DNA of 64,000 bases, taken from the NCBI GenBank assembly GCA_977017575.1, contig CDRNVI010000009.1, forward strand, positions 620,001 to 684,000. The letters run 5' to 3'. The stretch comes from Paramoeba atlantica. Taxonomy: Eukaryota; Protista; Discosea. The position numbers were made by a program, and so were the translations under genes. The notes below the pieces were generated by a model. That model saw only the letters and a list, made by a program, of their open reading frames with translations. It made no database searches and was not told where the DNA came from. This document shows positions 6,009 through 22,600 of this stretch, one piece after another; the stretch's first letter is position 1, and each line of letters opens with the position of its first letter.

Positions 6009-7116
6009 ATGTCACAGATTTGCCTTCTTCCTTGGTCTAACGTTGCACATGGATTTACTGGATATTCCCCGGAAGTTATTTCGCAACTTGCGTCTCGGCT
6101 TAATTGCACTAATGTTCAAGTTTTTAGTGCACTTACGATGCTGCATTTGAATCTAACGCACGAGCAAACAGCTGACGTTCTCATACCATATTTGGGTAAG
6201 CATTATTCCTCTACGTACGTGTGGAAAAAGTTTATTCGGCCTGTGTTGAATGCATCTGACATTGCAGGCAACCTTGCTGAAACAGAGCGACGCTTTTTGG
6301 TCCGTGAACCACACTTTGTTCTGTGCACATCAATACCGGACGGAGTTCCCATGTACAGTAGGGGACCAAAAGAACTCTACAATGGAAAGCACTCGGCTAA
6401 ATACTGGACTTTTCAAGTTTTAATTATGATGGACGGGTGTCCTTTAGCATGGAGCGGACCATTTGAAGGGCGGATGCACGATAGCGAATGTTTCGCAAAC
6501 TCTTCGATCCTTGGATTTTCGCATAAAAAAGATGAGTTAATGATGGCCGATAAGGCATATAAACGTACGAAAGGGTAATGACATTGATGAACAATTCGAT
6601 ATGGAGTTTCGGCGAATAAGAAATCGGATCGAACGCTTTTTTGCTCATATAGATCACCACAAAATTCTTCACTATAATCAACACCGCATCGATTTTGTCA
6701 AATCCGGCTTTGGACTGCTTTGGAATGCAGAATGCTTTCGGTGGAAATTTTGCAAGCGAGAATTGTACCGCGACACGGTGGTTATGTTGGATGCTGAGTC
6801 GAAGTTTGTAAACGAGTGGAAATCTAGGCCAGATTGTTGTACATTTTTTAAGGATGATGCTAGAGACAAAGAAGTAATAAAAGATTACCGCGATAGTATA
6901 AAGCGAGAACTTTACATTTCTGGGATCAGTAATGTAGGAAAGTGCCCAGCACATGCCAAGAAATCGGTTGTAGCATATACAAAGCTAACGAAAAGTGAAA
7001 TTCAGAGGAAAAACGAAAAGTTGAAACTCATACACGATGAAGAACAAACTTCCAAGAGAAAGTTTCGCAAATATTCCAATCGGTTGGACAAGAAAATGTT
7101 TAATCAGAACGAATAA
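6009..7116 (+). pseudogene. PIF/Harbinger (DDE_Tnp_4 family) transposase, frameshifted near 6560-6580
   Basis: Motifs PDGVP, YNGKHS..WTFQVLIMMDG..W.GPFEGRMHDS, MADKAY, then in another frame RKGNDIDEQFDMEFRRIRNRIERFF. Confidence 0.8.
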
Positions 7117-7955: not shown

Positions 7956-8047
7956 TATGATACTACTACCATAACCTTTTTTCTCTATCGCAAAGTTTTG
8001 ACTATTGCAAAATTAAAGTGGGCTTGCTTCTGGGCGCAACCCAAAAT

Positions 8048-8120
8048 GGGGAAGTAAGGTCGGGATCTCCTCGTGGTCTTCCCTGGTACTGCTATCTTAC
8101 TGATGGTACTAACGCTGACC
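8048..8120 (+). ncRNA. HDV-like self-cleaving ribozyme
   Basis: P1 GGGGAAG/CTTCCCT (G-U at +1), P2 GGTCGG/CTGACC, P3 ATC/GGT, L3 TCCTCGT, P1.1 CC/GG, P4 TGCTATC/GATGGTA, J4/2 CTAA with the catalytic C. Confidence 0.85.
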
Positions 8121-8160
8121 TAAGAACATTCATAAGCAGATATTTTTGAAGTATGCACGA

Positions 8161-8261: not shown

Positions 8262-9785
8262 GTGTATGGGGCTCCAACTACGATATTTAACTCGTCGTGT
8301 TCGCCGACTAAGGTTCTGAGGGGAGTCCGACAAGGCGACCCATTAGGACCGTTACTGTTTTCTCTCGGCTTGCACCAAATTCTTGGAAAATTGAAGGATG
8401 AGTTCAGTGATCTGACGCTTTGGGCTTACCTAGACGACCTTTCAATCATCGGCCCGGCAGAACGTGTCGCACAGGCGTTTGGCGCTCTCTATGATCACTC
8501 TTCGGGAATAGGACTGGAGGTACATCCGGCCAAATGTAAGCTTTCGACGCATTTCAATGACCAGTACGCTCCTTTCAGAGGCATGAACATAGAGCATGCG
8601 GAGCAAGGACAAAAGCTCCTAGGCGCATTCGTCTCCAAGGAAGGCGCGGATGAAACCAGATGGGTAGTCAACCCAATGCCTAAATTGCAGACATTCCTGG
8701 ATCGGCTGCAACATCTCTCGTTACAAAGTGCTTACATTTTGCTGAAGAGATGTGGAGTCCCCCGGTGGGACTACCTAATGAGGTGTCACGAGCCGGAGGT
8801 AACGGCAAAAGCGAACGTGTTAGCGGACAAGGCCATACAGGAGTGTTCCTCAGAGCTGCTAGGAGGCTTCGAAGACCTGGAAAAGAACCCGTTTCACAGT
8901 ACTCTCATGACGGGCGACCATTTGGGGGCGAAACCTTTTGCGCAGCAAGCGGCAACTCTGTATTCTCGCACAGAAGCTGAGGTATTAGGGTGTATGGAAA
9001 GACGACGTTCTGCCTTGACAAGATATGAAGAGTCGAAGTCAGCAGTGCGTAAAGAAACCAGCGAACTACATGACGTCCATTCACTTCAGTTGATGGACAA
9101 GAGAACGCGCAATTGGACAGAGACGCGTAGGAATCGGAGTGAGTACTTCACGCGCGACGCAGAATGGCAAACAGCCATGCGCATGCGATACTTGATAGCC
9201 CCTACTTCGGACCCTTTCGCACAATGTGAGTGCGGAGACATCCTCTCAAACAAAGATTTTGTTGTGCACGCCCTTGACTGCAATAAAGTCAAAGGCGACA
9301 CCGCGGCCACTCGCCACAAAATTGTTAAGAATGCCTTCGTGCACTTGCTACGACAGTACGGATTCACTCCTGACAATCATGAACCCCGATTCTCCGATGG
9401 TCAGGGCCCCGACGTCTGCTTTATGCTGGGAGGAAAGATATGTCTGGTGGACGTGACCGTCGTTAACCCTCTCGCCCCTTCTTATGTTACGGCCGAACGG
9501 GTAGCGCCTGGCAACACCCTAGAAAGGGTGGAAAGCTTGAAAGTAAAAGCGCACAGTGACATGGCCACGAAAAGGGGTATGCATTTCTACCCGCTTGCAG
9601 CTACCGTTTTTGGTGAGGCAGGGAAGCGCACCGTACTCCTCCTAAAGGAGATCGCAAGGTATACGTATGACAGGAAAGGTTTCCTGCGTCATGCACTACA
9701 AGCCATTGATGTTGCTGTTCAAAAAGGCAACGCCGCGATACTATCCTCCGCGGTAAAAGAGTGGAGGAAGGCGGGTGTCCGCTAA
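8262..9785 (+). CDS. CRE-clade non-LTR retrotransposon RT plus restriction-like endonuclease, N-terminally truncated
   Basis: RT motifs GVRQGDPLGPLLFS, AYLDD, GLEVHPAKC; CECG...HALDC zinc knuckle; RLE RHKIV...EPRFSDGQGPD...DVTVVNP...K...FYPLA..VFG. Confidence 0.9.
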   Translation: MYGAPTTIFNSSCSPTKVLRGVRQGDPLGPLLFSLGLHQILGKLKDEFSDLTLWAYLDDLSIIGPAERVAQAFGALYDHSSGIGLEVHPAKCKLSTHFNDQYAPFRGMNIEHAEQGQKLLGAFVSKEGADETRWVVNPMPKLQTFLDRLQHLSLQSAYILLKRCGVPRWDYLMRCHEPEVTAKANVLADKAIQECSSELLGGFEDLEKNPFHSTLMTGDHLGAKPFAQQAATLYSRTEAEVLGCMERRRSALTRYEESKSAVRKETSELHDVHSLQLMDKRTRNWTETRRNRSEYFTRDAEWQTAMRMRYLIAPTSDPFAQCECGDILSNKDFVVHALDCNKVKGDTAATRHKIVKNAFVHLLRQYGFTPDNHEPRFSDGQGPDVCFMLGGKICLVDVTVVNPLAPSYVTAERVAPGNTLERVESLKVKAHSDMATKRGMHFYPLAATVFGEAGKRTVLLLKEIARYTYDRKGFLRHALQAIDVAVQKGNAAILSSAVKEWRKAGVR

Positions 9786-9912
9786 TTATACTTATAAACG
9801 CTAGCAAAAGGTGTCTTTCTCTTTATATTTTCACAATTATTAATACTTAATTAAAAGTAATAGAAAACAAAGAAAAAGGCATGCCGTTTCTCCCTCACAC
9901 TTACCTCTACTT

Positions 9913-9992
9913 CCTTCTCCCTTACACTTCGTCGCTCATGCACATGAGGACGACGCCGGGCCTGGGACCGGTTACTAGCGTGTTTTGGAAGG
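9913..9992 (-). ncRNA. Twister ribozyme (type P1 with P5), copy B, general-base G appears mutated to A
   Basis: CCTTCC-AAA-ACAC-GC-TAGTA-A-CCGG-TCCCAGGC-CCGG-[P5 hairpin]-A-GTGT-AA-GGG-AGAAGG matches the O. sativa twister layout element by element. Confidence 0.85.
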
Positions 9993-10291
9993 CGTGATAA
10001 TGTATCTTTATCGTTAAAGATGACAAAAAGGTAGTGCAGTGAGTATGACAATCCAGGTAGTGCTGTATGAAGAAATACTACCAAGAGAGCAGGAAAAACA
10101 ACATCTGAGTATCCTGACGAAAGAAAAAAAATAGAAAGATTCCCACGGGAAAAACTCTTCAAAACTAACACCATGTGTATCGACGCTATGCGTATGAGTA
10201 TACAAACTTACTGAGTATACACTTCAACCTTACTGATTATACACTTCAACGAACAAGCGCTACAGTATTATGATTTTTGTTTTTACAATAA

Positions 10292-10582
10292 CTAGATTCT
10301 CATTATTATCAATGCCAGTACGACGCTAATGTAAAGGGCGCCTCTGTTTAAGCAAAACAAGAACAATCTGAATGCACGCACAAGGTGACAACCATGAAAC
10401 ACAAGGTCAATAATATTAGCGAAGGGGCTGCTGCTAGGGCAATCTCTTTGAAAATGTCCTTTTCCTTGACATGAATGACATGTCACTGCGGCACCACGAT
10501 ACTTATCGCGGGACACACACCACTTCGACGAGTGGCCATGACAAACCTCGCAACGAAGACTTCTCTCTGTCGTAGAGGCTTT
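10292..10582 (-). pseudogene. gag-like double zinc-knuckle remnant
   Basis: Open frame KASTTERSLR-CEVCHGHSSKWC-VSRDKYRGAAVT-CHSCQGKGHFQRDC (CX2CX4HX4C); in-frame TGA immediately upstream. Confidence 0.7.
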
Positions 10583-11101
10583 TCAAGGGAAGATATACTG
10601 TTCGCCTGAGTTCTGATACCCAGACGTGGGATAACCTTTCGGATGACCAATCGCCATCGGAGACGGAATCGCCTCGGAACCATCAGATGGTTTTGATGTT
10701 CATGTTTTGATGTTCATGCGCTCGTTGGCGCAGAGATACAGCCCTTGATGCGACAGCCGATATCATCGGCACAATCCGTAATGACGGATGTCGCACCAAG
10801 GGGGTTTAGCTCGGACTCTGTCGGTAGAGGGGGTCCAGGCAACTCGCCCTCTCTTTACGCAGCCGGAGGGGCGCACTGCAACCGACCGCTGCCTCGCGAT
10901 AAGACGAGGCAGAGCCACGCCCAGTGGTGCTCAAGGGAGGCCACCATGGCGCATGGCTCCCCGGGAAGGAAAGGGCGCGAAGGGAAGAAAGCCGGGGAGG
11001 GAAGAAAACCCACTCAAAGAGTGAGCCGGGGAGGGGTGATGGGGTGGAAGCGCGTCCGCTACTTCGCCGAGAAAGAGGGACAGTTTCGGCCTTAGTGCCG
11101 G

Positions 11102-11143
11102 CCGGCAACGGGCATATAACAGTAAGACTATGCCCGTTGCCGG
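11102..11143. other. Perfect 15-bp stem-loop
   Basis: CCGGCAACGGGCATA / TATGCCCGTTGCCGG with a 12-nt loop. Confidence 0.85.
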
Positions 11144-11171
11144 GGAAAGAAAAGATCAACTAAAGGAAAAT

Positions 11172-11214
11172 GTACCAACAAGGTACAGAAACTGTATCTT
11201 TTTTGCGTACCAAC
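11172..11214 (-). ncRNA. Spliced-leader (mini-exon)-like sequence with donor junction
   Basis: GTTGGTACGCAAAAAAGATACAGTTTCTGTACCTTGTTG|GTAC; the 16-nt GATACAGTTTCTGTAC core is followed 7 nt later by TTG|GTA, as in the 39-nt trypanosomatid SL exon. Confidence 0.65.
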
Positions 11215-11470
11215 TCCATAACGTCGAAACATCAAATCAAGTTTTCCACGATTTACATAGTCCGCCAAAACCTCTGGCTCTCCGAACACTATTGTACTTT
11301 ATGCACCGGTGCATCACACCCTAGAGGAGACAGTGATCCTCCAGAAAAACTATCCTCATCCTAGGGCTCGTTAGAGCACACTAGGGCCTTAGCCATAAAG
11401 GCCTCGGATAACAACACAAGATCCGGAGGTCACCTAGGGCTCGTAAAAGCGCACTAGGGATCATCACCAA

Positions 11471-11542
11471 ACTTCACCCTCAGACTTCGTCGCGGGGCGA
11501 CGATGCCGGGCTTGGGACTGGTGACAAGCGTATTTGTGAAGT
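11471..11542 (-). ncRNA. Twister ribozyme (type P1 with P5), copy A
   Basis: ACTTCA-CAA-ATAC-GC-TTGTC-A-CCAG-TCCCAAGC-CCGG-[P5]-A-GTCT-GA-GGG-TGAAGT; catalytic GA-GGG intact, one mismatch each in P2 and P4. Confidence 0.88.
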
Positions 11543-12075
11543 CCGTGATAATGTATCTTTATCGTTAAAGATACAGTTAAAGATAGTTAAAGACCGTGGC
11601 CTCTGCATGGTTCACTTCATACTTGAAGTCTGGAGGCCAAGAGCCACCTGTAATCTAGACCTGTTCGTCATCTAGGTACAGCTCCGCCCCCCATCCTTTA
11701 CTCGACGCATCAGTATCCAGGGGGGGTCACGAATTTCCGGGGGGTCTAAAATTTGTGTCGTGAGAGATTTTTTCGGGCGAACTATTTTAGTATTGAACCC
11801 TAAGAAAGACCCTAAATCAGTTTATGGTGTTGCCTTTGATTCTTTGCGACAAAAACATTTTCCGGTAAATTTTTTGTCGACCAAATTTCGGGCGAAATAT
11901 CGGGCCAAATTTTATTAATATGTGATAGCGAGGGAGTAGTATCTCCCTCAATAAGTAAATAGCCGTACCCCGGGTTATTAAGTCCTTTTGATTTTTCTTT
12001 AGCTTCTTATTCACCGATACTTTTGATCGTATCACGGAGCGATAAAAGGAACCTGACGCCCCCTTTTTTTCAGAA

Positions 12076-14487
12076 ATGCTACGCACCCGACTATGCTCCC
12101 GTCATCGCCACACCCCTCCAACCACCCTGGACCCCGCCCTCAAGCACCTTCGCAAAACCCTCGGGATCCGTTCCCTCACCCGCCAAGGCCTCTTCAAAAC
12201 CCGCGAAGGGGAGAGTGCCGGTCAATTCGGCCACGACCCCTACAACCGCCCCTACCCCATGATGACCCACACCGACTTTGGTTTCTTCGAACACGCCGCG
12301 GACACCCACCATGCCGAAATGGGCGCCATGCTCCCCCGTAAAGGTAAAGGTCTCCCCCCATGGTACCGTGGCGCGGACACCTACTCCCCCCTCTACAGTG
12401 AACAAGCCCGCTGGGAGGTCCACCGTCACACCATGGTAGCCCGCCACCCCCGGGAGTACAAACACCTCTTCCTGTTCTACCTCTCCCGCATCCGCCAGCC
12501 CTACCACGCCCCCCACTACCTCCCGCAGCAGTCCCTGCACTGGCTGCTCCGCATGCTCGTCGACAACCTCCCCCCGCAGCACATCCACTACCAGTCCGCC
12601 ATGGAGTGTCTCATGCACTTTGGGGAGTACGACATGGCCGTGGACGTGTGGCGGACCATGGAGCGCCAGCAGACCTGGCCCGAGGATAAGCTCATCGGGC
12701 TCTACCTCCAGCTGTGCGCGCTGGTCCGGGGCGCCGGGATGGCCCTGGAGTGCTGGAACCGGTACGCCAGCGAGAAGCGGTTTCTGGAGACCCACGAGGT
12801 GGATCCGAAGCCGGTGTCGCGGGTGCCGTTTGCGCTAACCCGGGAGGAGCTGTTTCATTTGCCAAAGTGGAAGAAGCATTTCGAGCATGACCCGAATCAG
12901 GATGTGGTGGACTTGAACCGGTTTAACACGACACGGAATATTTACCGGTGGATGTGTGCGGCGCTGTTAAGTGCGGGGGAGACGAAGCTGATGGAGGGGT
13001 TTCTGGGGGAGCTGGAGGAGAAACTGCTCGAGACCCCCACGCCGGTGCCCGAGCCCCCGAATCCGAGGATGCTCCCCCATCGGGAGACGTGGAGTCCGTA
13101 TCTGGAGCAAAAGCATATGGAGAACCCGACGTGGCGGTTTGAGGATGGCTACACCGCGGGTAAGGGTCTGGGGCCGCAGCGGCCGGAGCTCCGGGAGACC
13201 CACAGTAGGTTTCTCTCCAATGAGCAGTACCTGCTGCGGACGTACTGTACGCTGCTGGAAATGATCTATCGGCATGCTCCACGAAAAAAGGACAAGGAAG
13301 GGCGCTCTAAAAATTCAACACTACCGGTAGGGAATTCCACGCAGTTTTGTGAGAAAGGGATCGAGCGGTTTGCGGCGAATATTCCCGATCCCTACCAGTT
13401 TGGTGTTCGTCTGATGCAACGCTGTGAGAAGGTACTCGGTGAGGATCGGCTGCGAACACTCGACCTGCGACGGTATCTCCAAACCTGCCTGCGTCATCAT
13501 CGAGAACTGGGGAATGTCTCCGCGACCGAGCTCCACGATATTGCCCACGGGTTGTTACGTCCACGGCAGGAATCCCTTCATGGGGCACATTACTTGGAGC
13601 TGCTGCTTGGGATTGTGAATGAGGCCGAGAGCCAAGGGCCTCTGGAGGCGAGCGCGTGTCGGGAGCTTCTTCAAACCCTCATTCGACTTCTCCGGGAAAT
13701 GAATACCGCCCCGGGGATGACCTGGACCCTCGCGCACCATATGGCCGTACTCCGGGTTCTCGTGGGTTGTCGTACCGGCAAAGCCAATGCCTATTTTGTA
13801 CAAAACGTGCTACGAAAGTTTAAATGGACCGATGAGGCGATTGTGGTGCTCTACCGGGAGTACAAGCTCCATCCCGATGTGAATTCCTGGGCAGAGCACA
13901 CGAAACGCGCCCTGATCTGGGCCGCGCGGTATAATGTGCGGGTCTCCGAAACCACACGTCGTCTGATTGAGGAGGACTATGAGGTAATTGGGGTACAGAT
14001 GCGTACGACCCAGGAGTTGATGACCTTCGCGTACCGAAGTAAAAGTGAGGAGAAGCAGAGAGCGGACCCGAGCGCACAGCTGCCGAATCCCGTGATGGAT
14101 CGTGTGGTGCACGCGCTGCCGTTTCCCGACCGCGATACCGGGTTTATGAACGAATACGGAGAGCTTGGACAATGGAGGAGCCCAAATGTCGGGACCGGGG
14201 CGAAAGGACCGGGGTACTGGGCTCCTCGGATGTATGGGGAACACCAGCAGGGGTACCACGCGGAGTGGAGGGACCGCAGCGACCCGATGTGCCCCGTGAA
14301 ACTCCCCTCCCCGTTTGATCGTAAGTACAAGGCGTTTGCCCGGGGCAAGCACCCGAGTTATGACATGACGTATGCCGGACCGCATCCAGAAATCTTTCCT
14401 GACCGGCATAATTGGAGACGACGGACGCGGTGGGACTTCCAGGATGTGCATAAGCAGGGGAAGTTCCGCATGCATGGACCGTATTAA
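12076..14487 (+). CDS. Mitochondrion-targeted helical-repeat (PPR-like) protein, possibly a kinetoplastid mitoribosomal or RNA-binding protein
   Basis: 803 aa; Arg-rich MLRTRLCSRH presequence; PPR-like YQSAMECLMHFGEYDMAVDVWRTME; aromatic/Pro-rich C-terminus. Confidence 0.55.
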   Translation: MLRTRLCSRHRHTPPTTLDPALKHLRKTLGIRSLTRQGLFKTREGESAGQFGHDPYNRPYPMMTHTDFGFFEHAADTHHAEMGAMLPRKGKGLPPWYRGADTYSPLYSEQARWEVHRHTMVARHPREYKHLFLFYLSRIRQPYHAPHYLPQQSLHWLLRMLVDNLPPQHIHYQSAMECLMHFGEYDMAVDVWRTMERQQTWPEDKLIGLYLQLCALVRGAGMALECWNRYASEKRFLETHEVDPKPVSRVPFALTREELFHLPKWKKHFEHDPNQDVVDLNRFNTTRNIYRWMCAALLSAGETKLMEGFLGELEEKLLETPTPVPEPPNPRMLPHRETWSPYLEQKHMENPTWRFEDGYTAGKGLGPQRPELRETHSRFLSNEQYLLRTYCTLLEMIYRHAPRKKDKEGRSKNSTLPVGNSTQFCEKGIERFAANIPDPYQFGVRLMQRCEKVLGEDRLRTLDLRRYLQTCLRHHRELGNVSATELHDIAHGLLRPRQESLHGAHYLELLLGIVNEAESQGPLEASACRELLQTLIRLLREMNTAPGMTWTLAHHMAVLRVLVGCRTGKANAYFVQNVLRKFKWTDEAIVVLYREYKLHPDVNSWAEHTKRALIWAARYNVRVSETTRRLIEEDYEVIGVQMRTTQELMTFAYRSKSEEKQRADPSAQLPNPVMDRVVHALPFPDRDTGFMNEYGELGQWRSPNVGTGAKGPGYWAPRMYGEHQQGYHAEWRDRSDPMCPVKLPSPFDRKYKAFARGKHPSYDMTYAGPHPEIFPDRHNWRRRTRWDFQDVHKQGKFRMHGPY

Positions 14488-14699
14488 GGAACGGGGTCGG
14501 GAAGGGGGAGTTGTAGATGTAGTCGTAGTTTACTGAACCCCATAGGTACGTGTGTGTAGAAGTGTAAATTGGGGGTAGGTGAGTTTAATGATAGTAAAAA
14601 AAGAGACGTAGATTTGTTAAAATTTCGCGCGTTGTTTTCATGCGTTTTTTTGTAACGAAATTTGGAGTACAAAAGACTACAAAACCCAGCCTTTCCCCC

Positions 14700-16322
14700 A
14701 TGACCTGCCCCCGTCGTCGTTGTTTCTACGACGTCCTTAACGTCACCTCCTTCGCCACCGCTTCCGAAATCCAAACCGCGTACCGCCAACTCGCGCTGCT
14801 GTGGCACCCCGACAAGAACCCCCACCGGGTCGCCCAGGCGGAGGCCATGTTTAAGGAACTCGCCCACGCCTACGGGGTGCTGTCGAACCCCCCGGAGCGC
14901 GCGTGGTACGATAACCACAAGGAACAAATCTTAAACCCGAGTTATGATGAAACGAATTCGAAGAACCATAAAAATAGAGAAGATGACGACCTGGAGGCTC
15001 AGCTCTATCGCTATTTCAGTGAGGCCTGCTATACCGGATATGGGGACGACAATGAAAAAGGGTTTTATGCGGTTTACCGGTGTGTGTTTGAGGAGATTGC
15101 GAAACGAGAGCGTGAGGGAGGAGGGGGAGGAGGCAAAGCGGCGAGAGGAGGAAAAACGGCAAACGCGAGTACGGATTCAACGGTATTGCCCTCGTTTGGG
15201 GATACCACAACGCCGGGACATGAAACTTTGTTTTTTTACAACGCCTGGGAAGATTTTACGACGCGTTTATCGTTTGCGCACTGTGAGGAGCATAAAGAGT
15301 TTGAGGCCAGCTGCCGACAAGAGCGTAAGGCGATGGCAAGAGAAAATGCGCGACTCCGAGGGGAAGCCCAGCGGTCGTATTCCACAACCGTCCGAATGTT
15401 ACGGCGATACGTGATGACATTAGACCCGCGGGTCGGGGAGGCACAAAAAGAACAGCAGAAGAAAAGAGAAGAAAAATTAGCCATCGCTGAGGTGTTGAGG
15501 TTAGAAAAGTTACAAAGACATGCCGAGAGTGTAGCAGCGGATTTGGAAGCAAAATCGGCCGAGGAGTTGCATGAGGAGGAGATGCGATTTCAGGAACATG
15601 AGGCGTTGTATGAAGCTTTAATGGAGCAACAAAGTGAGGGGAGAAGAAAAGGAAGGGGAAGACGAGGGAAAGGGAAGGAAAATGATACGCAGAGTAGTCA
15701 CAATACGACAGAGGGTGAAAAGGGAGAAGAGAAGGAAGGGGTAGAACCGGAAGAGGGAGATGTTGCAAATGGAGAGAATGATAGTGTCTGTGAAAACAAG
15801 GAGATAAACGCAGCAAATGAGACTGAACTGGTCTCCGAGGCGAAATCGGTGGTAACCCAAGAGGACACCACAACTAGTTCTTTTGATTGTAGACCTTGTA
15901 AAAAGTTTTTTAAGTCGATGAATTCTTATCAAACGCACCTACAATCTTCCAAACACAAGGCCACGATGCGAGCCATGGAGAACGACAAGACTACGAATTG
16001 CAGTTCTGGGATGGCTGATGATATGACGCACCGTACCACATCTCTTCACAAACTAACGTTAACTTCTGAATCGAGCAATTCTTCACAGAGTCATTCGCAA
16101 GGAGCAAGGAATGGAAGGCCCAATACATCGAATATTCATTCTGAAAGCACCAAAAACGACAGTAAGAAGAACGTGACACACGGTCCGAAACCCCATAAAA
16201 ATCCTAAGAATAAAACAAAAGTACCCAAAGAACAAAATATACGAGACAACAATGTGGGAAGAGAATCGGGGACTGAAGATGAGAGCATTGAGGATGAGGG
16301 AGCACGTTGTTCTATTTTCTAG
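14700..16322 (+). CDS. DNAJC21: J-domain protein with C2H2 zinc finger (DNAJC21/Jjj1 family)
   Basis: J domain with WHPDKNP, ERAWYDNHKEQIL, FYNAWEDFTT, C-terminal FDCRPCKKFFKSMNSYQTHLQSSKH. Confidence 0.85.
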   Translation: MTCPRRRCFYDVLNVTSFATASEIQTAYRQLALLWHPDKNPHRVAQAEAMFKELAHAYGVLSNPPERAWYDNHKEQILNPSYDETNSKNHKNREDDDLEAQLYRYFSEACYTGYGDDNEKGFYAVYRCVFEEIAKREREGGGGGGKAARGGKTANASTDSTVLPSFGDTTTPGHETLFFYNAWEDFTTRLSFAHCEEHKEFEASCRQERKAMARENARLRGEAQRSYSTTVRMLRRYVMTLDPRVGEAQKEQQKKREEKLAIAEVLRLEKLQRHAESVAADLEAKSAEELHEEEMRFQEHEALYEALMEQQSEGRRKGRGRRGKGKENDTQSSHNTTEGEKGEEKEGVEPEEGDVANGENDSVCENKEINAANETELVSEAKSVVTQEDTTTSSFDCRPCKKFFKSMNSYQTHLQSSKHKATMRAMENDKTTNCSSGMADDMTHRTTSLHKLTLTSESSNSSQSHSQGARNGRPNTSNIHSESTKNDSKKNVTHGPKPHKNPKNKTKVPKEQNIRDNNVGRESGTEDESIEDEGARCSIF

Positions 16323-16460
16323 CTCCTTTCATAATGCCAACCTTGTGTAGAACTTTATACTTTTAGCCTCATTTCAGTCAACGATGCTTTGTGAAGTAAA
16401 CCCTTTTTATTCTTTGATTCGGTCATCTTTTCATTGATTCTTACCTCACCACATACACAC

Positions 16461-17651
16461 ATGCGGCACTTCACCCCCACCACCGTATTTCATACAGAAA
16501 ACCCACTGGAGTCTCTCATCAATCTCGACGCCCTTCCAAAGCTTCCCCTCTCACCTCCACATGCCATCGGTGAGGAAGAATTTGACGACTTGTCCGATCA
16601 CACCTCCGATCACCCCAACCACCCAATGTGCAACAAAAACGATGAGGATACGGAAAACACCCTTACCCACCCTTTCCAACACCTCCACATATCCCCCCAT
16701 CCCCATTCTTCCCCTTCTTCCTCCTTTATCCCCAAAACCTCATCCTCTCGACTCCCTTTGTCCGATTCCACGAATCTCAATCATGTCGCATCCCACCCTA
16801 CCCGAATGCTTCCCCCAAAGCCGGTCCTCTCCAAACACCCTTCCCCCCTTTCTACCCTTTCTAATCTTTCCCCTCTTTCTTCTTCCTCTTTTTCCCCCTA
16901 TCCCCCCTCTTCTTTTTATTCTTCTTCCTCTTCCTCTTCCTTTTCTTCATCCCCTTATTTGCCCCATCCCCTGCGTTCTCTTCTATCGTACCACACCATT
17001 GCTGTGGGGTTCAAATACGGAAGCACGCGGTACTATCCCAGTCCCTCCCCTCTGCCCTGCGGGGCCTACGTGTTGGTGGATGCCGACCGGGGGGTGGATT
17101 TAGGGAGAGTTACGCATTTAGGGGATAAGAAAAGCAATAATAATAAGAATAATAATGAGAAGAATGAGCATAAAGAGGAAAAGAATATGAATAAGAATGA
17201 AGAAAAGAGTGAAAATAGAATGGGGAGAATGGAGGAGGGGAATTGGGAGAACCAAAGTTGTAATGTTCCTATTCCGGTGCATCCGTTAATGTCGAAAACG
17301 ATGAATCAAGAAAAATTTCCCGATTCTAGAAATATTAAAATCGAATCGGGTCGAATTTTACGTTTAGCGACATTGGAGGAGTGCAAACAATTTCAGAATG
17401 AGGTCTGTATTTTGGAATACCATGCAGCTCGGATCTGTGCGGAATATGCGTTAACCTATCGCTTACCGTTGCTGGTGTTGGGTTGCGCCTACCAGTATGA
17501 CCGAAAGAAGGTTACGTTTTATTTCTATGCGGAGCACGGGTTGGATTTCCGATCTCTGATTCGGGAACTGTTTCGTGTATTTGGGTCTCGGATTTGGCTG
17601 CAGAACGTCAATGGGAATGCCCCGGGGTGGGGAGGAGGGAAGGAGGTGTAG
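16461..17651 (+). CDS. PSP1 C-terminal domain protein
   Basis: YVLVDADRGVDLGRV ... ILRLAT ... AYQYDRKKVTFYFYAEHGLDFRSLIRELFRVFGSRIWLQNV. Confidence 0.85.
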   Translation: MRHFTPTTVFHTENPLESLINLDALPKLPLSPPHAIGEEEFDDLSDHTSDHPNHPMCNKNDEDTENTLTHPFQHLHISPHPHSSPSSSFIPKTSSSRLPLSDSTNLNHVASHPTRMLPPKPVLSKHPSPLSTLSNLSPLSSSSFSPYPPSSFYSSSSSSSFSSSPYLPHPLRSLLSYHTIAVGFKYGSTRYYPSPSPLPCGAYVLVDADRGVDLGRVTHLGDKKSNNNKNNNEKNEHKEEKNMNKNEEKSENRMGRMEEGNWENQSCNVPIPVHPLMSKTMNQEKFPDSRNIKIESGRILRLATLEECKQFQNEVCILEYHAARICAEYALTYRLPLLVLGCAYQYDRKKVTFYFYAEHGLDFRSLIRELFRVFGSRIWLQNVNGNAPGWGGGKEV

Positions 17652-18236
17652 GGGGATGTTTTTTGGCTAAGTTTATTTTCTTGCAAATTTACTCTTCATT
17701 TGTTTTTTTTCTTCGATCACCTTCACTCACTTTACTTGCTGTTATTTGATTCTTGCTTTTTTCTGTTTTGCTTTACTCACTTTAAATCATTAAAGTAACG
17801 TGTATTGCTGTTGATGGATCCACAATTAAAGTATGCCAGTTTTTCATCTGTCTCACGTTATTGTTTCTATTTACTTTGCTTTGAAATTTTGTGAATTGTT
17901 GTCTATAATCATAGAAGCTGGTAAGCTATTCGTGATTAGTTTTGCCAATAGAATGCAGTTGACTTTTCAGAGTGTCGAATTTATCTTTACATACAGTATA
18001 GGAAAATATTTATTCCTGGCATTTTCGACCACTTGCTCTTTTTTCAATAGAATTCCACTTCTTTAATATTACCGGATAAGAGATTAAAGATACTTTGTAT
18101 ACGCGATTCGTGTTTCCCTATTTCATTAAATTTCCACCATAACTCCCGTCCTTTCAACTTGTTTCTCAACCTTTATTCTATACATTATTCTTATACATTA
18201 TTTTACGACTCTCCTAAATACCGCTTTCCTACCCCT

Positions 18237-18506
18237 ATGTCTCGTAAAGAGAAAGACCTCTCCAACAAGAAAGAGGACGTTGTGCTCCAGCAAGGAGACC
18301 ACGCGCGACTGGCGCAGGTTATTGAGGTTCTGGGCCGTACGGGAAGTCGCGGGGGTGTCACCCAAGTACGCGTCAGACTCCTTGCCGAGGATGGATCGTT
18401 ACAGGAGAGCGGACGCACGATTATTCGAAACGTGAAAGGGCCATGTCGAAAAGACGACGTGTTGGCACTCATGGAAACTGACCGAGAGGCACGGAGGTTA
18501 AGGTAA
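18237..18506 (+). CDS. RPS28: 40S ribosomal protein S28 (eS28)
   Basis: [22 protein letters not shown]...[10 protein letters not shown]...[16 protein letters not shown], with a kinetoplastid-style insertion. Confidence 0.95.
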
Positions 18507-18803
18507 AAAAGGTAAGGGACTAAAACACACAGAACGTTGAAGAAACGGAAAGGACTCACCGAGGAAGGTAAGAAAAGGAGGCGTGTTTTGCCTGTCGAAA
18601 AAATGATTTTTGTTGCGTGATCTGAAGCGTAAGAATCATGTGACATTTAATAAAATGTAAAAATTATCTAAAAATGATTTACAAATGAGCATTTAAGCTG
18701 CATGGTATGTAGTTGCATTGATTTTTAAAAACAATGAAAACAATGTAGAACCGTACATTTTACTGCACTTAGGTTTCTATTTTATTTCGCATAGAGAAAT
18801 TTT

Positions 18804-19505
18804 ATGCTTGAAGCCGGGAATACTACCTTGAAGCCGGGAATACAGCTCTGTACGTCACCTAAAAATGGGGACTCTGAGATTAAAAATTCCCCACAGATAG
18901 TGCCATCACAATCTACGACGACGACAAGTGAAGCCCTTCGATCCCACATTGCTTCGTCTTGGACTTTGGAAAAGGACGCTCAGGATTCTACCCCAAACAC
19001 CAATGATTTATTTTCACGCCTTCAGCACGCTTACGAACAAGTAGTAAATCTTTTGTTCAGGTACGACGGAACTTTGCTTACAGAACAAGATACTACGGGC
19101 ACTGTTTTTGTTAATCAACTGGAGCAGGGGGTAGAATTACTCGAATCAACATTAAAACAGGTTGCACACCATCATTTGACGCGGCCTTTACAATTGTCCC
19201 CTGCTTCACACGAAGGAACTGACAAACACGCCAAAGACAGCACTACGCCTGAACAACAAGAGCTCCTACAACAGGTGAGACATCTTGTTACGTTTTTAGA
19301 GGGCAACTGCAACGAAGTGCAGGCACTCGTGGATGGGGTGACTGCGTTTTCACCAGTGGCAGGTGCAGCCGAACGTGTTGGTTCACCAGAAAATCTCTCA
19401 TCCAGACATTACACCTCACACGGCCGTCGCACCACAGAGAATCAAGATTTTACCCCAGGACCCCTACGACATCCCCATTTGTCACGCAGCCAGGGTTATT
19501 TTTGA
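18804..19505 (+). CDS. Hypothetical protein (233 aa), partly helical
   Basis: Long ORF in the + strand cluster; no motif recognised. Confidence 0.5.
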   Translation: MLEAGNTTLKPGIQLCTSPKNGDSEIKNSPQIVPSQSTTTTSEALRSHIASSWTLEKDAQDSTPNTNDLFSRLQHAYEQVVNLLFRYDGTLLTEQDTTGTVFVNQLEQGVELLESTLKQVAHHHLTRPLQLSPASHEGTDKHAKDSTTPEQQELLQQVRHLVTFLEGNCNEVQALVDGVTAFSPVAGAAERVGSPENLSSRHYTSHGRRTTENQDFTPGPLRHPHLSRSQGYF

Positions 19506-19660
19506 ATAAGATCCATAAATATTTATTTTGAATCCTTTATCAGCAACAAACAGTATTTCCTTCCTTATGACAAAACCAATGCCCGACGAATTCAAAAACG
19601 AACCACCTTTTTTCGCTTAACTTACCTTTTTTTACCCTACATCCTTCTCTTCCCCCTTTC

Positions 19661-22600
19661 ATGAGCACTCCAATCTACCCTACCGACACAACAAAAAAAT
19701 CATCCCCATCCCATACCCCATACCAAGAAACCAATCCAAACAACAACAGCAACCACAACCCGCCCATCAACAACAAAAAGGAAAAGAACCACAAAACGAG
19801 TCCCCCATCCCAGGAGAACACAACCCCACAAAACAGCAACCCCAGCAACCCCAACAACCCCCACAACCCCCACAACCCCAGCAACCCCAGCAACCCCCAC
19901 AAAACCGTAACCCCCCCCGACCCCCCCCCCGACCCCCACCCCCCCCTCGTCCCCTTCCTCTCCCTCTTCCGCCACCGCGACCCCACGGACACCGCGCTGC
20001 TCGCGCTCGCCTCCGCCGCCGCCCTGGCCAACGGGGCCGCCATCCCCGCCTTCTCCGAGATCTTCGGCCACCTCCTCGACGAGCTCGCGGGGACCCACTC
20101 GCTCGCAGAGGTCGGGCCCCGCGTCTCCGCGTGGTCCGGGCTCCTCGCGGCCGTCGGCGCCACCACCTTCGTGCTCTCCTTCATGGAGGTGGGGCTGTTC
20201 ATGCTCGCCGCGGAGCGACAGATCCGCCGGGTCCGGCAGCGCTACCTCCAGGTCGCCCTGCGACAGGACATGGCCTTCTTTGATGCGGTCACCCCGGGGG
20301 AGATCGGGTCCCGGCTCGCGGGGGACACGAGGCTGATGCAGGCCGGGATGGGGGAGAAGGTGGGGCATGTGATTCACCACGGGGCGACGTGTGGGTTCGC
20401 GCTGGCGTTTGGGTTTGTAAAATGCTGGCCGCTGGCGTTGATTGTGTTGTCGATGATGCCGCTGCTTGCGGGATCCGGTGCGGCGCTGGGGAAGGTGATC
20501 TCGCGGATGTCGAAACAGTCCCAGGAGGCGTTTGCGCAGGCGGGGACGGTGGCGACGCAGGCGATGGAGAACATTCGTACCGTGCACGCGTTTAATGCGG
20601 TTCCGTGGGAGATGGCGCGATTTCGAGCCCATTTGCGGAAGGCGCGAAAGCATGGGATACGGAAGAACATTTTCACGGGTCTCACCTCCGGGATGGTGTA
20701 CTTTATTATCTTCAGCTCCTACGCGCTGGCGTTTTGGTACTGCACCCGACTGATTCGCGATCAACGCTACACTCTGGGGGAGATCGTCGCGTGCTTCTTT
20801 TCTGTTGTCATTGGTTCGTTTGCGATTGGCATGATGGCACCTCCGATGACAGATATTGCCACAGCCCGTGGCGCCGCGTTCCGTATTTTCGAGACTCTGG
20901 CACGCCAGCCGGCGATTCGTGTGGAGGAGGATCCGCACTCCAAAGAGGAAAACGTCAGAAAGGTCCTTCCCGAGCTCCAGGGACGTATCCGTTTTAAAGA
21001 TGTGCAGTTTGCCTACCCCTCCCGACCTACACAAACCATTTTTGCAAGCCTCAACCTTGACATCCCGGCGGGATCTTCCATTGCACTGGTTGGACCCTCA
21101 GGCACCGGTAAATCCTCCATCGTGAGTTTAGTCCAACGTTTCTATGACCCCCAGGGCGGGGAAATTTTGATTGATGACATCGCGCTACCCGAACTCCCTT
21201 TGCGTGCGTGGCGCGGTCATGTCGGGGTGGTCTCCCAGGAGCCTTCCTTATTTTCCGGGACCATCCGAGAAAACATCCTCGCAGGTCGTCCCGATGTCAC
21301 GAATGAGCAACTTATGGATGTGTGCAAGCAGGCGTACATCCATGACACCATTATGAAACTCCCATCACAGTATAACACTTTGGTAGGCTCACTAGGCTCC
21401 CAGCTCTCTGGGGGACAGAAGCAGCGCATCGCGATTGCTCGAGCGCTGTTAACAAAACCGAAAGTGCTGCTGCTCGATGAGGCGACCAGCGCGTTAGATC
21501 GTCGCAGTGAGGTTATTGTGCAAAAAGCGATTGACACGCTAATGGCGAGTACCCAATGTACCCGTGTGGTGGTCGCCCATCGACTGGCTACGATTAAGGA
21601 TTGCGATCATATTTATGTGTTTGATCGGGTGAGTACACCAGCCGCGGGGGTAGAAAAGGATAAAGAGGGGATGGAAGACACGGAGGAACTCAAGACAATA
21701 AGCTCTACGGAAATTGTCGAACATGGAACCTACGTGGAGTTGCTGGAAAAAGGCGGTGTGTTCGCGGCAATGGTTCATGCACAAACGAAATCGGATGCAA
21801 GACGGGATCGTATGGAGCAAACAACAGCACAAACTCAACCGGTTCAAAAAATCGTTGAAACAGCGAAGGAAATAGTCGCAGAACAAAAGAAAGAAGAAGG
21901 AGAAGAAAACGATCTTCTGGAGGAAACCTGCGAGGAGTCGTCTGCTAAATCAATGGCTCCTCCCCAACCGAAATTTTCTATTCCTTATCTTCGCATCGCG
22001 CGTCTGTGCCGTCCCGAGTGGTGGGCCCTTTCACTTGGAAGTCTCGGCGCCCTTGTCGGCGGGGCCGTCTACCCCTTCTACGCCGTGATCTTTAGCCAAA
22101 TGATGACGGTGCTCTCCCAAAAGCAAGGCGCAGAGCTCGAGCGTGAGGGTCCGTTCTGGGCGATGCTCTTTTTAACCATTGCAGGTGGCAGTCTCTTCGC
22201 CCATTCCTTCCAATTTGGCTTCTTCGGCTATGCCGGGGAGAAGCTCACCGAGCGACTTCGTATTTCGTTATTACGAGCTCTTCTCCACGCGGAGGTTTCA
22301 TTCTTTGACACCCCTGGGCATGAGCCCGGGGCTCTGGGAGCGATTCTGGCCGGGGATACGGAGTCCATTCACTCGTTATTTGGTCCCGCAATCGGGTTAC
22401 GGATAAGTATGGCCTCTACGCTCGCGTGTAGTCTTGGGATTGCATTTTACTACTCGTGGAAACTTGCGCTCGTTTGTATGGCCATGGTCCCTGCCGTTGT
22501 GGTGGCCGGACTCGCTAATATGGCTATGGTCGGGAGTTCATACGATTCGGGGGACCAGGACGCGTTGGAGAAGGCAGGCACGATTGCGCATGAGTCCACA

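Follow-up and report, generated by a model that had tools for sequence, protein, structure and literature searches.

The minus strand of the 64,000-nt stretch of Paramoeba atlantica DNA analysed here, referred to as the window, bears two twister ribozyme motifs whose predicted cuts lie 1550 nt apart. On this strand, positions 9858–11572 likely contain two unlike and incomplete mobile elements, each represented by its twister-bearing 5' head, that came to stand 1.55 kb apart by chance within a transposon-rich island. The interval between them would then have arisen through nesting and truncation and would not replicate as a unit. An initial annotation of this DNA had described the interval as a retrozyme-like unit bounded by the two twisters and mobilised by the adjacent reverse transcriptase. 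As set out below, the ribozyme motifs stand, and neither the unit nor its mobilisation is supported.

Detection and structure of the twister family

A covariance model, R1, was built from an alignment of 25 distinct genomic twister copies, and a search of the whole 45.7-Mb genome with this model returned at least 105 twisters at E≤0.01. The core 13-mer GTCCCARGCCCGG is found 42 times in the 45.7-Mb genome, versus no occurrence of the reversed control. Across the 25 copies the twister structure including both pseudoknots (P1, P2, P4, P5, T1 and T2) is paired in 90.9% of the cells of the alignment, while sliding the pairing partners by 1–3 columns as a control left 34–46% of the cells paired. 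Two-sided changes were identified at eight pairs in this alignment, six of the seven pairs of P5 and two of P1. Note that P5 and P1 covary and that P2, P4, T1 and T2 are nearly invariant across the family; such scarce variation of these four elements is in line with the expectation for a catalytic core. The pseudoknots T1 (CCC/GGG) and T2 (GC/GC) are paired in 96% of the cells across the family, and the conserved loop UCCCAAGC is present. The helix order P1-P2-P4 and the N-AA at the predicted cut site are those of a type P1 twister (Rfam CL00120), and the minimum-energy folds of one F1 copy, one F2 copy and window copy B yield the P1-P2-P4-P5 junction unaided.

Against the Rfam model twister-P1 (RF03160), preserved copies from five families align over the full length with 28–36 bits and E values down to 9e-5. 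The Rfam scores span 16.3–36.4 bits and all remain below the gathering score of 67.2 bits, which the printed alignments trace to a missing P3 and an inserted P5 and not to an absence of resemblance. The covariance check that the initial annotation had proposed thus came out in two halves, with an end-to-end alignment to twister-P1 and 105 matches to the model built here on the one side, and a score short of the gathering value on the other. A chance or low-complexity resemblance to twister, with no ribozyme behind it, would agree with scores below gathering and with E values of 0.2 and 5.1 in the window. Such a reading would nevertheless have to account for the core motif count of 42 against none in the reversed control, for the 105 genome-wide matches to R1, for compensatory changes in P5 and P1 between families, and for the full-length alignment of the best copies to the Rfam model at E values down to 9e-5, and we give it next to no chance of being right. 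Judged by their sequence, the motifs are genuine members of the twister ribozyme family, associated with mobile elements and predicted to cleave themselves.

The two twisters of the window

Twister A occupies positions 11545–11469 of the minus strand, with a predicted cut at 11536/11535, and twister B positions 9995–9911 of the same strand, with a predicted cut at 9986/9985. Both cuts had been predicted at these positions, and they agree with the sequence, as does the distance of 1550 nt between them. The alignments to twister-P1 cover the complete model from position 1 to 68 in both cases, for A at 11540–11473 with 21.2 bits and for B at 9990–9915 with 16.3 bits, and the R1 scores are 82.9 bits for A and 78.4 bits for B. 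In a scan of the window at Rfam gathering scores no family passes anywhere, and the permissive scan alone reveals the twisters. With full-length Rfam alignments, R1 matches and the pairing across 25 copies, the two minus-strand motifs of the initial annotation are confirmed where they had been placed.

Read from 5' to 3', the common order begins with a 21-nt match to the start of the spliced leader (SL), a TTATCAC box, the 5' strand of P1, the N-AA and a 4-nt strand of P2. This is followed by GC, a short linker, CCGG-UCCCA(A/G)GC-CCGG forming P4 and its loop, the P5 hairpin and an A, and it closes with the 3' strand of P2, (G/A)AGGG and the 3' strand of P1. The box and twister A together extend over 11469–11551 and contain P1, P2, P4 and P5, with P3 absent; the box and twister B extend over 9911–10000, with an extended P5. 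The leader of A (11552–11572) corresponds over 21 nt to approximately the first 21 nt of the SL gene, with 19 consecutive identities to the SL genes at loci L058 and L059, and the 21-nt SL-like leader of B (10001–10021) is identical to that of A. Immediately upstream of the leader of A, three stuttered copies of TCTTTAAC are present at 11573–11600 on the minus strand, as if the 5' end of the SL had been copied repeatedly.

Both cores deviate from the family. Twister A contains two mismatches, U.C in P2 and A.C in P4, and the two sides of the P2 pair are both altered with respect to the family without restoring the pairing. Twister B departs from near-invariant letters of the family in two places, with an A for G in GAGGG and a G for A in the UCCCAAGC P4 loop; GAGGG is retained in the duplicate of twister B on contig C4. 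The mismatches in A and the A for G in B had already been listed, and the substitution in the loop of B is additional to them. The minimum-energy fold of twister A is misfolded, with P2 and P4 not formed, and twister B as well as its version on C4 yield the three-way junction.

The direct repeats of about 110 bp in the initial annotation are to be corrected: the leaders form part of a 29-nt exact repeat that includes a shared departure from the SL sequence, and the twister modules themselves are just 65.9% identical over 86 alignment columns. The nearest relative of B is a B-family copy on C4 (90.7% identity), and the nearest relatives of A are L038 and the copies on C51 and C60 (L063), with 82–83%. 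Downstream of A and downstream of B, the sequences are unrelated. We assign A and B to different subfamilies or families and do not regard them as LTR-like duplicates of one another. The identical 29-nt leaders nevertheless hint at some link between the two heads.

Elements headed by the twister module

Throughout the families F1, F2, F3 and B, the upstream flanks of the twisters vary by locus. Downstream, members of one family share their sequence, and no relationship is seen from one family to the next. BLAST homology between families is confined to approximately 97 nt comprising leader and twister, and the module is thus the common 5' head of several repeat families, which upholds the initially annotated tie between twisters and mobile elements. 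Within families, homology extends over more than 1.5 kb in F1 and over 2.5–2.9 kb in F2, and the ribozyme lies at the 5' boundary of the element in F1, F2, F3 and B. The conserved module of approximately 100 nt consists of the SL-like leader and the box CATTATCAC, followed by a type P1 twister with P5 and without P3. P1 belongs to the element, and its two strands covary within each family. No reverse transcriptase was seen within 1.5–4 kb downstream of the twisters in the loci examined.

In F1, F2, F3, F4 and B, the 17–18 nt upstream of the cut recur as an internal inverted copy 0.25–1.6 kb downstream. This stretch combines CATTATCAC with the family's own P1 5' strand and the N that precedes the cut. 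Its inverted counterpart begins exactly at the cut site and is specific for each of the five families. The likely service of the twister would be to release the RNA of the element from a polycistronic readthrough transcript, in the way of HDV-like ribozymes for R2 and L1Tc and of twister variants for Perere-3. In a type P1 twister the cut falls after the 5' strand of P1, so that 17–18 nt of the element would be lost with each cleavage, and the inverted copy probably allows the lost end to be rebuilt, or else controls folding.

Three observations on individual families may be added. In the F2 elements at L066 (1553–4048) and L067 (1161–4048), both on the minus strand and of 2.5–2.9 kb in length, GCGTGTTTA is found near the 3' end as the complement of the first bases left after the predicted cut, and this represents a second terminus-complementary box beside the internal inverted copy. 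The A-type twisters at L063 and L068 (C51 and C60) contain a duplicated stretch in the region of P1 and P2 and are located approximately 0.7 kb upstream of an ORF for a leucine-rich-repeat protein of 641 aa on the same strand. At L065 (C53:204.9k), a DDE_3 transposase ORF of the Tc1/mariner type, probably a separate insertion, stands within 1–2 kb downstream of an F3 twister.

For A as for B, the window contains no inverted counterpart of the stretch removed by the cut, and both window copies are thus incomplete. Their downstream family homology is also short. Behind twister A (11202–11468), the first 106 nt or so are common to three other A-type copies with 81–82% identity, and the remainder is unique to the locus. 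Behind twister B, homology to other B copies covers 9858–9910 and stops at approximately 9858, leaving copy B as a 5' stump of about 165 nt. With both cores mutated and neither copy accompanied by its inverted counterpart, we consider the locus decayed, as had been suspected initially from the altered conserved core positions in both copies. Since both are damaged as well as incomplete, no working cycle is to be expected in the window.

Composition and copy number of the interval

The sequence between the two heads is a mosaic. A complete SL-headed retroposon of the approximately 580-nt type, with discrete ends, is nested at 10702–11201 on the minus strand. The SL-like exon that had been annotated within the interval is real, and it belongs to this insertion. 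Between the retroposon and the leader of B follows a single-copy stretch (10022–10701, minus strand) that is found here and in the C4 duplicate only and includes the remnant of an ORF at 10295–10582. Its CCHC zinc knuckle, noted before, is corroborated by a match to zf-CCHC with E=1.2e-5; in the genome the ORF forms no multi-copy family and has only two weak relatives with 35–38% identity.

In a genome search with the whole unit, many relatives were obtained only for interior positions 272–771, corresponding to 11201–10702 of the window. The remaining parts, 11472–11202 and 10701–10022, occur elsewhere only at C4:128426–129876, apart from the first 106 nt shared with A-type copies. This one further copy is part of a duplicated region exceeding 13 kb, C4:118000–131485, that is collinear with 8413–21757 of the window at 98–99.5% identity, and it therefore does not represent an independent insertion. 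The search for intact copies of the 1.55-kb unit suggested with the initial annotation accordingly ended with this locus and the duplicated block on C4. Many twister loci form near-identical pairs on different contigs, an observation that suggests haplotigs or a large assembly duplication. In DNA contigs from public runs, 10055–10693 and 11262–11474 are present at single-copy depth equal to that of the flanks, and the contig of the nested retroposon reaches approximately 100–200 times the depth of the flanks. The single run presumed to be RNA placed no contigs at the locus, and the other four consist of DNA contigs.

A repeat comparison of the window revealed no repeat flanking the unit and no TSD pattern. 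A search for a 3' end module common to the window unit and the elements of family F2 matched the twister modules alone. No other same-strand pair among the 105 hits shows a spacing of 1550 nt, and the remaining pairs are found at C8:78190–78394, 111 nt apart, and at C25:113184–117669, 4.4 kb apart. In the proposed history of the locus, copy A would have retained its head and some length of its body and would then have been invaded by the approximately 580-nt SL-headed retroposon, and copy B would remain as the short stump described above. Minus-strand transcription together with cleavage at both sites would release an RNA of 1550 nt, as an accident of position.

The adjacent reverse transcriptase and the retrozyme hypothesis

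The reverse transcriptase next to copy B is part of a partial element on the plus strand (8262–9790; RVT_1, E=1.3e-10) with its 3' end at 9787–9790. At least 25 other copies of this element end at the same place with no twister beyond, and a recurrent junction between this 3' end and an antisense twister was therefore rejected. The reverse transcriptase lies on the strand opposite to the twisters, with a spacer of 67 nt of unique DNA between its 3' end and the copy-B fragment. We regard the adjacent reverse transcriptase as unrelated to the twisters, and on these three points its proposed role in mobilising them finds no support. The window also contains a fragment of a DDE_Tnp_4 transposase of the Harbinger type at 6009–6578 on the plus strand. 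A stretch at 8031–8126, for which an HDV-like ribozyme had been noted earlier, matches another locus with 86% identity and no Rfam family at gathering score. From 12076 onward, all genes of the window are on the plus strand.

These data bear on a retrozyme-like cycle, in which a 1550-nt RNA released by transcription through both twisters would be circularised, copied by the neighbouring reverse transcriptase and inserted anew. Plant retrozymes combine LTRs of 300–400 bp carrying hammerheads with 4-bp TSDs, a PBS, a PPT, many copies and circular RNA (PMC4918200), and animal retrozymes are of a tandem type (PMC7229834). The likeness consists in two self-cleaving ribozyme motifs on the same strand that bound an interval of approximately 1 kb, and the correct folds of copy B and of its C4 version also speak for such a cycle. 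In contrast to retrozymes, the motif here is a twister and not a hammerhead, and the repeats are approximately 100 nt long and 66% identical instead of reaching LTR length. A pattern of PBS, PPT and TSD like that known from retrozymes (PMC4918200) was not apparent either. The interval exists as one locus that is not repeated, its sole other copy being part of the duplicated block, and its interior is chimeric and contains a coding remnant. Furthermore, A and B are not each other's closest relatives, both cores are mutated, and the junction with the oppositely oriented reverse transcriptase does not recur. All retrozyme features that could be tested fail at this locus, and we consider a retrozyme-like cycle very improbable.

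Spliced-leader sequences and the twister leader

The true SL RNA genes are arranged as tandem units of 1454 bp (L058 and L059, at C3:780747 and C3:782201) on a contig other than that of the window. Their SL exon ends in ...CAGTTTCTGTACCTTGTTG and continues with GTATGAG..., as opposed to GTACATTTT... after the SL in the dispersed retroposons. The SL-headed retroposon has a length of approximately 580 nt and discrete ends, and it starts with positions ~10–38 of the SL (L053–L062). By its SL junction pattern, with 237 hits, the retroposon has at least 237 genomic copies, tens of which are 92–98% identical; most copies contain a 77-nt internal duplication that is missing from the window copy. In both window copies the twister leader covers positions ~1–21 of the SL, and in other twister copies it starts at ~8–13, a range that coincides with that of the SL head in the abundant retroposon.

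A comparison of L016 (C30:769.5k) with L056 (C3:184.4k) is instructive with regard to the origin of this leader. Both loci have a flank of 1503 nt in common, with 99.4% identity up to position ~21 of the SL, beyond which L016 continues into a twister element of family F1 and L056 into the SL-headed retroposon. The two may represent a filled and an empty site, that is, integration at an SL position, or else a recombination between SL-like leaders. The SL-like leader could in principle be the footprint of a target, with elements entering at position ~21/22 of SL genes or of the SL heads of retroposons and the twister freeing the RNA from a capped SL stub; in that case A and B would represent two such hits, and a 1.55-kb RNA might incidentally arise from readthrough. 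Just three sites in the genome contain the 3' half of the SL with the 5' part missing, none of them near the test locus, and neither the SL junction nor this 3' half directly follows another twister element among the twister loci examined. The empty-site test with the flank of L007 led to a partner locus that also bears a twister. As the searches for the SL 3' half and the SL junction and the L007-flank test provided no support for integration at the SL, we regard this model as unlikely.

The same comparison bears on a tandem integration, in which the interval would be one complete, non-autonomous element of the A type with the retroposon nested inside, and B the head of a second element directly behind it, brought there by entry at the SL-like leader or by recombination between leaders. 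It is consistent with the 29-nt leader borne by both heads, with the shared flank and subsequent divergence of L016 and L056, and with the existence of further close twister pairs on C8 and C25. On the other hand, the inverted cut-off copy is missing, although complete elements of five families have one, 951 nt within the interval are unique genome-wide, and among the loci examined no further twister element was directly followed by an SL 3' half. We hold a tandem integration to be quite unlikely and retain the reading as two different incomplete heads in chance proximity.

Comparison with known ribozyme-bearing elements

DIRS-type retroelements possess an internal complementary region, and in a similar manner the complete twister-headed elements described here hold an internal stretch complementary to their terminus, which the window copies are without.

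Among twisters, the one at the 5' end of Perere-3 of Schistosoma mansoni is the nearest published parallel and the only one with an experimentally supported role so far; there the target-site duplication supplies the P1 5' strand, whose sequence differs between insertion sites (PMC8501958). In both systems dispersed retroelements begin with a twister at their extreme 5' end, for which release of the element RNA from a co-transcript is proposed. In contrast to Perere-3, the P1 5' strand and the CATTATCAC box are conserved here, with P1 strands that covary within a family; moreover, an SL-like sequence precedes the twister, an internal inverted copy mirrors the head, and no reverse transcriptase is located within 1.5–4 kb downstream in the loci examined. 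HDV-like ribozymes head R2 and the trypanosomatid L1Tc/ingi elements (PMC4035085, PMC3383444), and with R2 and L1Tc the present elements have in common a self-cleaving RNA, here a predicted one, at the head of a retroelement in a polycistronically transcribed genome. The HDV-like ribozymes cut at their own 5' edge with no loss to the element, whereas a type P1 twister would send 17–18 nt along with the upstream fragment.

The initial annotation knew of no such element in kinetoplastids, and a literature search combining twister with trypanosomatid, kinetoplastid, Bodo, euglenozoan and diplonemid likewise found no relevant paper that reports twisters from kinetoplastids or other euglenozoans. 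The window locus itself adds little, being in our reading a decayed and accidental pairing, and the retrozyme idea does not appear worth carrying on. The significance lies with the genomic family of at least 105 twisters, which show a different arrangement, with a conserved SL-like head, a P1 5' strand of the element's own and an inverted spare in the complete copies. This family would provide a second, independent system for twister function in mobile elements, in a lineage with long readthrough transcription units.
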